DNA from: Octopus bimaculoides
Taxonomy: Eukaryota
Assembly: GCF_001194135.2 (NCBI RefSeq)
Contig: NC_068982.1
Span: 151,042,082 to 151,085,238 of the forward strand
Reading direction: 5' to 3'
DNA length: 43,157 nt
Positions within the stretch are counted from its first letter, which is position 1. Every line of letters begins with the position of its first letter. Both the position numbers and the translations under genes were made by a program. Shown piece by piece: positions 30,911-33,373 of the stretch. The notes beneath the pieces are model-generated. The model was not told the DNA's origin. It ran no database searches and saw only the letters and a list, made by a program, of their open reading frames with translations.

Positions 30911-32121
30911 TTTTGCTTTCTTCTTTCTTATTTGTGTGTCTTTCCTTACTAACGATCGGCCATTTTTCTGGCTGATCGCTAGTAAGACAAGCATCCCCAC
31001 CCAACCTAGTCTGCATCCAGGGACATGTTTCTGAGTCATTGCTCGTCATCAGCCTGAAGTAGCAAAACCAGCTGGCTGAAGATGTCTGTCAACCTCTCAC
31101 AAATATATATATATTTCTAGTGAAAACACATTCACTGATTACAAAAATTAGAAATGATCTAATTATAAATCTCACAGAGAGAATTAAGTTGACAGTATAC
31201 AACTGGTTTATCGTAACACTGCATCTTATAGCAGAAATAGGTGTAAGCTAATGAAGTTCATAAGACAATTATTTTTTTTCCTTTGTCATCTCTCTTTTCT
31301 TATTACCTCTCTATACTCAGCTAGGACTTTGTTCTGAAGCATGCGTATATTATATGTTGACTTCTATACTGGGTTAGTAGTCTCGCAATGCCTAAGCGAT
31401 ATATATANNNNNNNNNNNNNNNNNNNNNNNNNNNNNNNNNNNNNNNNNNNNNNNNNNNNNNNNNNNNNNNNNNNNNNNNNNNNNNNNNNNNNNNNNNNNN
31501 NNNNNNNNNNNNNNNNNNNNNNNNNNNNNNNNNNNNNNNNNNNNNNNNNNNNNNNNNNNNNNNNNNNNNNNNNNNNNNNNNNNNNNNNNNNNNNNNNNNN
31601 NNNNNNNNNNNNNNNNNNNNNNNNNNNNNNNNNNNNNNNNNNNNNNNNNNNNNNNNNNNNNNNNNNNNNNNNNNNNNNNNNNNNNNNNNNNNNNNNNNNN
31701 NNNNNNNNNNNNNNNNNNNNNNNNNNNNNNNNNNNNNNNNNNNNNNNNNNNNNNNNNNNNNNNNNNNNNNNNNNNNNNNNNNNNNNNNNNNNNNNNNNNN
31801 NNNNNNNNNNNNNNNNNNNNNNNNNNNNNNNNNNNNNNNNNNNNNNNNNNNNNNNNNNNNNNNNNNNNNNNNNNNNNNNNNNNNNNNNNNNNNNNNNNNN
31901 NNNNNNNNNNNNNNNNNNNNNNNNNNNNNNNNNNNNNAATTAAATAAATTCTAATTCTCTAAGGAGATGAAATAATGCTTCTAACAGTTAAATGGCGTGT
32001 AAGTAACACGTTATCTGCACAAATGTCTGGTGTATAAAAAATATCAGTCGTTGTTGTTGTTGCTGCCGTTATTATTATTATTATTATTATTATTATTATT
32101 ATTATTATTATTATTATTATT

Positions 32122-32520
32122 GTATTTGCACAGCTTCTAACGCTGGAGATGTACTATAGTGTCAGCTGTTCACTACCAGTGACTAAGGTAACACTTCTTA
32201 TTTTTCGAGCACCTTTCGGAGTATTCGAGCGGTTCCAAGCAGTGCTGTTTTCTGCAAGTGCTCCAATCTTATTGCAACCCCTATTTGCTACACGTACCTC
32301 TCAAGATTTTTGCTCACTATTCCCAGGGCTCCGACAATTATTGGTACTACTGCCACCTTTCTCATCGACTACAATTTCATAACTTCCCAAGCTAACCTGT
32401 CATATCTCTCGACTTTTCTTTCTTCCTTATCGCATACCTTGTTGTCAGCTGGGCATGCTATATCTATGATCCAGCATAATTTTCTTTCTCAATTAAGACT
32501 ATGTCTGGCTTTCTATTCTC
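32122..32520 (-). mobile_element. 5'-truncated R4/Dong-like RLE retrotransposon, family E (absent from the ORF track)
   Basis: IENRKPDIVLIEKE/LCWIIDIACPADNKVCDKEERKVERYDRL...VVPIIVGALG...LQKTALLGTARILRKVLEK* with one frameshift and two internal stops; (AAT)n directly at both ends on its sense strand. Confidence 0.88.
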
Positions 32521-32638
32521 TATTATTATTATTATTATTATTATTATTATTATTATTATTATTATTATTATTATTATTATTACTATTATTATTATTATTA
32601 TTATTATTATTATTATTATTATTATTATTATTATTATT

Positions 32639-33100
32639 GTTCAGTAGTTTTATTTTTATAACGTGCTTTCACTTCACTACCGAGCGCAGCTCTGTGCGCC
32701 TTGGGTATGTGCTGTGGTTTGCTGTGGTGCTCTTATGTTTACTTTATTGAAAGTGTTTNNNNNNNNNNNNNNNNNNNNNNNNNNNNNNNNNNNNNNNNNN
32801 NNNNNNNNNNNNNNNNNNNNNNNNNNNNNNNNNNNNNNNNNNNNNNNNNNNNNNNNNNNNNNNNNNNNNNNNNNNNNNNNNNNNNNNNNNNNNNNNNNNN
32901 NNNNNNNNNNNNNNNNNNNNNNNNNNNNNNNGCCTTAATTTCTCTATCTGTGTGTATTGGCATATCCCAGAGTATGGTTGCTTTCTCGTTTTCTGTGACC
33001 TTTTCTGGCGTGTGTTTATACCATCTTTTTCCTGTTGTTATTCCATAGTGTTGGCATAGCTTCCAGTGTATATAGGTCCCAGCTCTGTCGTGTCTGTGAA
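32639..33100 (-). mobile_element. R4/Dong-like family A, copy 2 (gap inside)
   Basis: 5' part differs from 1018-1184 at only 2 positions by eye; same 3' terminus ...AAAACTACTGAAC then (AAT)n; 5' end joins (AAT)n at HRHD. Confidence 0.92.
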
Positions 33101-33208
33101 TTATTATTATTATTATTATTATTATTATTATTATTATTATTATTATTATTACTATTATTATCATTATTATTATTATTATTATTATTATTATTATTATTAT
33201 TATTATGA

Positions 33209-33373
33209 AGGTGGCGTACTGGCAGAAACGTTAGCATGCAGGGAAAAATGCTTAGTGGCATTTCGTCCATCTTTACGATCCGAGTTCAAATTCCACTGAG
33301 TTCGACTTCGCCTTTCATCCTTTCGACTCGATCCCGCCCCAAAGTTGCTGGCCTTGTGCTAAAATTTGAAACC
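33209..33373 (+). mobile_element. SINE family A copy with internal deletion
   Basis: GGTGGCGTACTGGCAGAAACG...GAGTTCAAATTCC...AAATTTGAAACCATTATT. Confidence 0.85.

Follow-up and report, generated by a model that had tools for sequence, protein, structure and literature searches.

How does one run of ATT trinucleotides come to hold several truncated retrotransposons, and what kind of element put them there? The question is raised by a segment of the Octopus bimaculoides genome (RefSeq assembly GCF_001194135.2, contig NC_068982.1, positions 151,042,082 to 151,085,238 of the forward strand), a stretch of 43,157 nucleotides that we refer to as the window and in whose own numbering all coordinates are given. 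A preliminary description of its sequence placed at 32070-33373 an element of 'family E' and a second copy of 'family A', both on the minus strand, and a plus-strand short interspersed nuclear element (SINE), separated by ATT spacers, and took them to form a stack independent of another near the left end of the window. We conclude that, very probably, the region is a nest of independent insertions in one (TAA)n microsatellite, and family A, family E and fam3, a third Dong-like family, are dead copies of Dong-type long interspersed nuclear elements (LINEs) of the R4/Dong lineage, which is part of the R2-like group.

The layout of 32069-33392 was obtained by reading the sequence directly and from the calls of Tandem Repeats Finder. 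Next to the left flank, and recognized by direct reading, is a degenerate (GTT)n/GCT array border (32044-32068), followed by a perfect (ATT)n array (32069-32121; period 3, 17.7 units, 100 % matches) that reads (AAT)n on the minus strand. Family E is a 399-bp insert on the minus strand (32122-32520), the degraded and 5′-truncated 3′ end of a Dong-like LINE, and a second (ATT)n array (32521-32638; 39.3 units, 98 % matches) separates it from family A copy 2. The latter, also on the minus strand, is divided by an assembly gap of 173 N (32759-32931) into a 3′ part with the last codons and the 3′ untranslated region (UTR) (32639-32758; 95.8 % identical to window 1486-1605) and a 5′ part that extends from the RHD motif to just before RPD (32932-33099; 98.8 % identical to window 1017-1184). 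A third (ATT)n array (33100-33206; 35.7 units, 96 % matches) leads to the SINE copy, which lies on the plus strand (33207-33373; 167 bp) and has a complete 5′ end, an internal deletion of about 45 bp and the 3′ end ...AAAATTTGAAACC. The strands and the order first described are thus borne out by the sequence and the repeat calls, and so are the inserts, but the right end of the chain is not at 33373. A degenerate ATT/GTT remnant of 19 bp, ATTATTATAATTGTTGTTG (33374-33392), is common to the SINE (plus) and to a fourth insert (minus), which stand tail-to-tail; this is an older, degraded fragment with a restriction-like endonuclease (RLE) domain (..KYKDLETEITRIWRLKAV..) that begins at 33393 and has its approximate right limit at 33560. 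It is 81 % identical to family A 1294-1356 by BLAST, with a tblastn match at 33423-33503. The chain consists of at least three Dong-like inserts and a SINE. We note that about 40 codons at the C-terminal end and the 3′ UTR are missing from the older fragment, which passes directly into CAACAACAATTATAATAAT.

The first stack (799-2745) is built of the same kinds of parts. An (AAT)40 array (799-919) precedes family A copy 1 on the plus strand (920-1605), which comprises the RLE domain and 3′ UTR with one frameshift near 1449; the conserved C-terminus IALLGTAHILRKTLSIQ of this copy (1449-1500) is in a different frame from the listed open reading frame (ORF) of 192 amino acids. An (AAT)20 array (1606-1665) is common to copy 1 (plus) and to a minus-strand SINE (1666-1885), again tail-to-tail. 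Beyond these lie a plus-strand fam3 copy of 118 bp that contains only 3′ UTR (1924-2041; 94 % identical to 2626-2745) with arrays on both sides, an (ATA)24 array (2042-2113) and a longer plus-strand fam3 copy with an intact RLE reading frame and 3′ UTR (2114-2745). The 118-bp copy is an extreme case of 5′ truncation.

In both stacks the LINE fragments obey the same rules. All five (A copy 1, the 118-bp fam3 copy, the longer fam3 copy, E and A copy 2) abut an array on either side, although arrays of the (AAT/ATT)n type make up only 1.66 % of the non-N bases of the window. The 3′ ends of A and of fam3 are each fixed by two copies that end at the same base, whereas the 3′ boundary of family E was set at the array edge, so that a count of ten ends out of ten at array edges is partly circular for that end. 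The sense strand reads (AAT)n in all five fragments, and the strand rule that had been proposed from both stacks therefore holds throughout; it is, however, the published hallmark of Dong-type (TAA)n-specific elements and is to be expected here, not new.

The same association is found outside the window. In relatives whose hosts are far apart, sense-strand (AAT/ATA)n tracts occur 90-260 bp past the stop codon: in L001, L002, an Octopus sinensis locus (L004) and two moth loci (L005 and L006), and a repeat is also present on the 5′ side in L005 and at a full-length shrimp copy in L007. The O. sinensis locus (VCDQ01003308.1, 4390-8001) has a plus-strand Dong-like element, (AAT)n at 6760-6931 and 7529-7783, and a minus-strand SINE at 7798-8001 in tail-to-tail arrangement. 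The shrimp locus (Penaeus chinensis CM032966.1, 1-4835) contains a full-length Dong-like element at 1420-4650. Interrupted (AAT)n arrays take up about 1.4 kb before it, and further arrays lie behind it at 4722-4835; an annotated 'gene' at this place splices the element to a distant exon. TAA microsatellites are known as targets of Dong from silkworm, from mosquito and from a snail, Biomphalaria (PMC3812793, which cites Kojima and Fujiwara 2004), and most RLE clades are target-specific, some of them for microsatellites (PMC4640811). Dong-R4 elements have been annotated as abundant in cephalopods (PMC8967140); in O. vulgaris they are abundant, with five recently active families and 1129 recent insertions (PMC13282606), and the O. 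bimaculoides repeat library includes a full-length Dong (PMC9115989).

Families A, E and fam3 are 5′-truncated 3′ ends of non-long-terminal-repeat retrotransposons that encode only the C-terminal RLE, followed by a 3′ UTR. An exhaustive HMMER search with the RLE domain recovered 9423 relatives at E ≤0.001, and in an alignment that includes A, fam3 and E (A2) the PD, D, P, K and Y positions are invariant. When the profile of this alignment is compared with the solved R2 proteins 9dou and 9nl3, the CCHC and RLE regions align with an E-value of about 1e-10, and the KPD, DV and EK..KYK motifs are in register with the RLE of R2 (including R2Tg). The (K/R)PD...D...K motifs, preceded by a CCHC knuckle and an RH(D/N) motif, are those of a PD-(D/E)XK RLE. 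Pfam, which has no model for the RLE domain, gave only sub-threshold noise with the three RLE peptides. In tblastn comparisons with ten full-length relatives, the window copies match only the last 170 residues or fewer.

Family E is much decayed. Its minus-strand translation reads ENRKPDIVLIEKEN, frameshift, KLCWIIDIACPADNKV..., stop, ...VVPIIVGALG..., stop, ...LQKTALLGTARILRKVLEK, that is, one frameshift and two stops in 108 codons, and it covers the RLE from 'ENRKPDIV' onwards and about 80 bp of 3′ UTR; the recognizable RLE motifs are ENRKPDIV.., IID, PIIVGALG and LLGTARILRKVL. No nucleotide match to family E was found elsewhere in the window by BLAST, and tblastn (32201-32520) gives 35-45 % identity to A, fam3 and full-length relatives. 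At the protein level E is 35-38 % identical to A or fam3, which are 54 % identical to each other. Since the ORF list contains no minus-strand ORF of at least 30 amino acids in family E, a track based on ORFs would miss it; the translation, the protein identities and the ORF list all agree with the original suggestion that E is a third RLE family overlooked by that track. Its two stops and its frameshift make it seem older than A copy 2, given about 97.6 % identity of the two A copies, although the comparison is a weak one because E is single-copy in the window.

Assignment to the Dong type relies on full-length relatives, many of which are proteins of 1050-1300 amino acids with the RLE at the extreme C-terminus. 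According to Pfam the full-length relatives, of 1100-1200 amino acids, have a central RVT_1 domain and a weak zf-RVT (CCHC) match before the RLE, and have no apurinic/apyrimidinic (AP) endonuclease domain. The protein plan of Dong/R4 (reverse transcriptase, C-terminal CCHC and RLE, no AP endonuclease) is thus present in the nearest of them, which are P0234 and P0238 for A (62-63 % identical in the RLE), P0242 for fam3 (67 %) and P0265, P0268 and P0271 for E (46-51 %). In O. sinensis L004 a fam3-like RLE (65 %) is contiguous with reverse-transcriptase fragments of Dong-like type, and an O. sinensis protein is among the named relatives of the peptides encoded by repeats in the window. The Bombyx mori Dong protein is 29-36 % identical to the full-length relatives nearest A, fam3 and E over 680-1000 residues (E 1e-119 to 1e-171, 383-525 bits), and 65 % identical to the moth relative P0300. 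That this protein is Dong can be checked at the nucleotide level: a Logan contig (L008) encoding a protein 99.2 % identical to B. mori AAA92147.1 / Q07431 begins with (ATA)n-AAT-AAGCTCCCTAAAATCCTACC, i.e. (TAA)n and then GCTCCCTAAAATCCTACC, and (TAA)n-GCTCCCTAAAATCCTACC is exactly the T7/TAA/Dong primer employed by the Eickbush laboratory at the 5′ junction of Dong (PMC3774820).

The best match of a full-length member (P0081) among solved structures is R2, at about 100 bits and with an E-value of about 1e-28 for the reverse transcriptase. Insertion into 28S rRNA genes in the manner of the R2 clade was not found here, the flanks being (AAT)n arrays and the window containing no rRNA according to Rfam. 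A self-cleaving 5′ ribozyme resembling that of hepatitis delta virus has been reported for Dong and R4 (PMC3774820); Rfam at its gathering threshold detects no ribozyme or other RNA family in the whole window, where all Dong-like copies are 5′-truncated. Two side observations concern the relatives themselves. The full-length Dong-like proteins P0248, P0280 and P0296 have an additional OTU-like cysteine protease domain (PF02338), and two hypothetical proteins of Pseudomonas aeruginosa (KAA5654931.1 and KAA5604176.1, from contigs of 390-493 bp) belong to the same 90 %-identity cluster as the B. mori Dong reverse transcriptase (P0413); they probably reflect contamination of bacterial assemblies with silkworm DNA.

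Family A is represented in both stacks, and its two copies bear on the integrity of the second stack as well as on its independence. BLAST and MAFFT show that both flanks of the gap in copy 2 are family A on the minus strand, in the same order as in copy 1 (920-1605), and the scaffold join at 32759-32931 is consistent with a single family A copy. Copy 1 has 301 bp between the points matched by the gap flanks, whereas copy 2 has 173 N, so that either the run of Ns is too short or part of the element has been lost from copy 2. Because the number of Ns is arbitrary, a listed ORF of 141 amino acids running through them is an artefact, and nothing is claimed about the reading frame across the gap. 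The two copies are about 97.6 % identical and stop at the same base at the 3′ end, but copy 2 starts at approximately position 1016 of copy 1, while copy 1 itself reaches back to about 920-982. The truncation points, the neighbours and their order all differ between the two stacks, which rules out a segmental duplication of the first stack as the origin of the second and agrees with the description of the latter as independent.

Target-primed reverse transcription (TPRT) is the established mechanism of R2-group elements and offers a simple model for the growth of such stacks. The RLE of the element would nick the strand reading (ATT)n, and the (UAA)n 3′ end of the element RNA could then pair with the nicked strand and prime cDNA synthesis. 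Pairing and priming of this sort would fix the orientation of the insert, and synthesis that usually stops early would account for the 5′ truncations. Each insertion would split the array and add its own (TAA)n tail, with the consequence that the array is regenerated and enlarged, the locus stays a target and different families pile up head-to-tail.

It might be argued that the chain is an artefact of assembly, with one or more chimeric joins made across identical (ATT)n runs by a short-read assembler or scaffolder: between E and A copy 2, between the latter and the SINE, or between its own two parts. Of the 12 N gaps in this AT-rich window with its many simple repeats, one falls within A copy 2; the spacer arrays of 107-118 bp, 96-98 % pure, are near or above the length of short reads; the gap is written as 173 N where copy 1 predicts 301 bp; and exact protein look-ups of four window ORFs, among them two that cross the E/A copy 2 and A copy 2/SINE junctions, brought up no other assembly of the locus. 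Nevertheless, such an error is unlikely. Family E, the array and the 3′ part of A copy 2 lie in one uninterrupted contig (31938-32758), as do the 5′ part of A copy 2, the array and the SINE (32932-34702), and the 3′ and 5′ parts of A copy 2 agree in family, strand and order. Similar chains in independent assemblies (O. sinensis L004 and Penaeus L007) make the architecture credible, and a wrong join would leave every element in a (TAA)n array in the orientation given. A different objection is that the LINE copies of a stack arose in a single retrotransposition, in which the reverse transcriptase left one RNA at its truncated end and continued on the (UAA)n tail of a second. R2 reverse transcriptase is known to be capable of such template jumping, and the LINE copies in each stack do share one orientation with only (AAT)n between them. 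We consider a concatemer of this kind distinctly improbable, although none of the observations that speak against it is decisive: the decay of E as compared with the high identity of A copy 2 to copy 1 points to different ages, the spacers are as long as 35-39 units, identity between the fam3 copies of the first stack is only 94 %, and the opposite-strand SINE cannot belong to the same cDNA.

Finally, the elements might have no target preference at all, having inserted at random with (TAA)n tails of their own that later expanded, in which case the stacks would be chance neighbours. Retrotransposon tails are indeed a known source of microsatellites (PMC3812793). This explanation is nonetheless hardly credible in view of the arrays that abut the 5′ end of each of the five truncated copies, which are cut at different internal positions, the small share of the window that such arrays occupy, the repeats at the 5′ flank of full-length shrimp and moth relatives, and the published Dong 5′ junction, which is (TAA)n (PMC3774820).

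Several points count against independent insertion of Dong-type elements into one microsatellite. The window copies carry no reverse transcriptase, and their assignment to Dong rests on the RLE domain and on relatives; membership of the Dong/R4 clade in the strict sense is therefore no more than suggested by comparisons with Dong and R2 proteins. In L009, the relative found for family E, the stop codon is followed by just a short ATAATAATGATAAT tract. Both the strand that would be nicked and the pairing of the RNA tail are proposed by analogy with R2, and the order of insertion cannot be read from the sequence. The assembly is a short-read assembly with many gaps, and with spacers of 107-118 bp of near-perfect repeat the adjacency of the inserts depends on this single assembly.

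The SINE is a different matter. About a dozen copies are present in the window, and the copy at 33207-33373 is 77-83 % identical to more than 10 others by BLAST. The unit is about 210 bp long and ends in ...GCCAAAATTTGAAACC, followed by a short (ATT)n or AT-rich tail; its orientation is fixed by the 5′-truncated copies, which keep the 3′ end. Target-site duplications of 14-16 bp are found at AT-rich non-repeat sites, for example TTATTAC[C/T]GTTTTG around the copy at 39490-39701 and AATATT[A/T]TACATT around that at 22687-22895, both read from the flanks. The element shows the features of a SINE, being short and present in many copies that share one 3′ end, with truncation at the 5′ end, a tail of simple repeat and target-site duplications. 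No tRNA-derived head was recognized, as ARAGORN reports no gene and Rfam no tRNA match even at E ≤10 over six copies (the low-threshold run covered window 25400-28450); a box-B-like GAGTTCAAATTCC can be seen by eye, but nothing more tRNA-like. Eight SINE copies have an intact 3′ end, and two of these lie inside long arrays (P about 0.007 under random placement); given the target-site duplications outside arrays, the SINE favours arrays but is not restricted to them. We note also a stack composed only of SINEs on the plus strand (27466-27986, continuing to 28393), which reads (TTA)15, truncated SINE, (ATT)5, truncated SINE, (ATT)2 and full SINE; both partial copies are 5′-truncated, and the subfamily has the 3′ end ...TAGTAGAAAGG instead of ...TTTGAAACC.

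In the first stack, the second stack and O. sinensis L004 alike, the SINE stands tail-to-tail with a Dong-like tail, and its sense strand ends in (ATT)n, opposite to that of the LINEs. This use of opposite strands of one array by the SINE and the Dong-like LINEs is the sole mildly new point of the locus. Mobilization of the SINE by the Dong-like LINEs is unlikely, since the tail of its RNA would be (AUU)n and not (UAA)n, BLAST finds no similarity between its 3′ region and the LINE 3′ UTRs, and it has duplications of 14-16 bp outside arrays; it is probably a separate system moved by another LINE. A possible, though rather doubtful, extension is that the arrays act as two-way landing pads, the (ATT)n tails of the SINE, which is very abundant in octopus, furnishing (TAA)n targets on the other strand for Dong-like LINEs whose own tails attract the SINE; the tail-to-tail pairs of both stacks and of O. 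sinensis would then be the outcome. Such mutual seeding of targets by two unrelated retroposon systems, if true, could help to explain the success of Dong-R4 in octopus.

Two further features of the window may be recorded. A fragment at 10660-11181 on the minus strand is another RLE 3′ end (tblastn 10851-11135; 33-44 % identity to relatives), with (CATA/ACAT)n on both sides of its sense strand, in the form of a 5′ array at 11115-11181 and a 3′ acatacatacatacat near 10660-10680; it looks like a second microsatellite specificity within the window. An interstitial telomere-type hexamer run, (TAACCC)7.3, is found at 20158-20201.

For genome annotation, the locus shows that (TAA)n arrays of this genome hold nests of Dong-type stumps which escape tracks based on ORFs, and it flags places where short-read assemblies break or may misjoin. 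The locus also suggests that methods which call insertions from unique flanks would under-count Dong activity, and this may bear on the report that there is no recent Dong activity in O. bimaculoides (PMC9115989).

How does this locus compare with known systems? R2 (9dou, 9nl3, 9nl2 and 8gh6) shares with the window families a homologous CCHC and RLE region, with PD..D..K in register, a related reverse transcriptase and, as a model, TPRT. It differs in its target, which is the 28S gene and not a microsatellite, and the similarity to R2 amounts to about 100 bits as against 383-525 bits for Dong. Elements that insert in other tandem repeats, namely Kibi (TC)n, Koshi (TTC)n, Togen (TG)n, Waldo/Mino (CA)n and the TRAS/SART elements of telomeric repeats, likewise exploit a simple tandem repeat that is safe and renews itself, insert in a fixed orientation and build up in arrays (PMC3812793, PMC4640811). 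However, Kibi, Koshi, Waldo, Mino, TRAS and SART belong to the R1 clade and carry an AP endonuclease, whereas Togen is related to NeSL, and the repeat motif differs. The octopus stacks are another example of safe-harbour targeting by RLE retrotransposons. The SINE, with its short (ATT)n tail, 5′ truncations and target-site duplications, and in seeding or occupying arrays, resembles SINEs and LINEs with microsatellite tails, such as those of the RTE type (PMC9115989, PMC2887409); the octopus element RTE-2_OV has a microsatellite-rich 3′ UTR.

The closest parallel is with Dong of B. mori and with DongAg and DongBg. Full-length relatives of the window families have the same reverse transcriptase and C-terminal CCHC and RLE, with clear homology to B. 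mori Dong, and like Dong-type elements the window families insert in (TAA)n with repeat on both sides and in a fixed orientation. The lineage was already found in a mollusc (PMC3812793), and octopus elements are annotated as Dong-R4 (PMC13282606, PMC8967140, PMC9115989). The window copies differ in being stumps of RLE and UTR, and in that three families, 35-54 % identical in the RLE, share arrays. The stacking of Dong-like elements described here is that of a known type of element behaving as published, in a genus where it had already been annotated.

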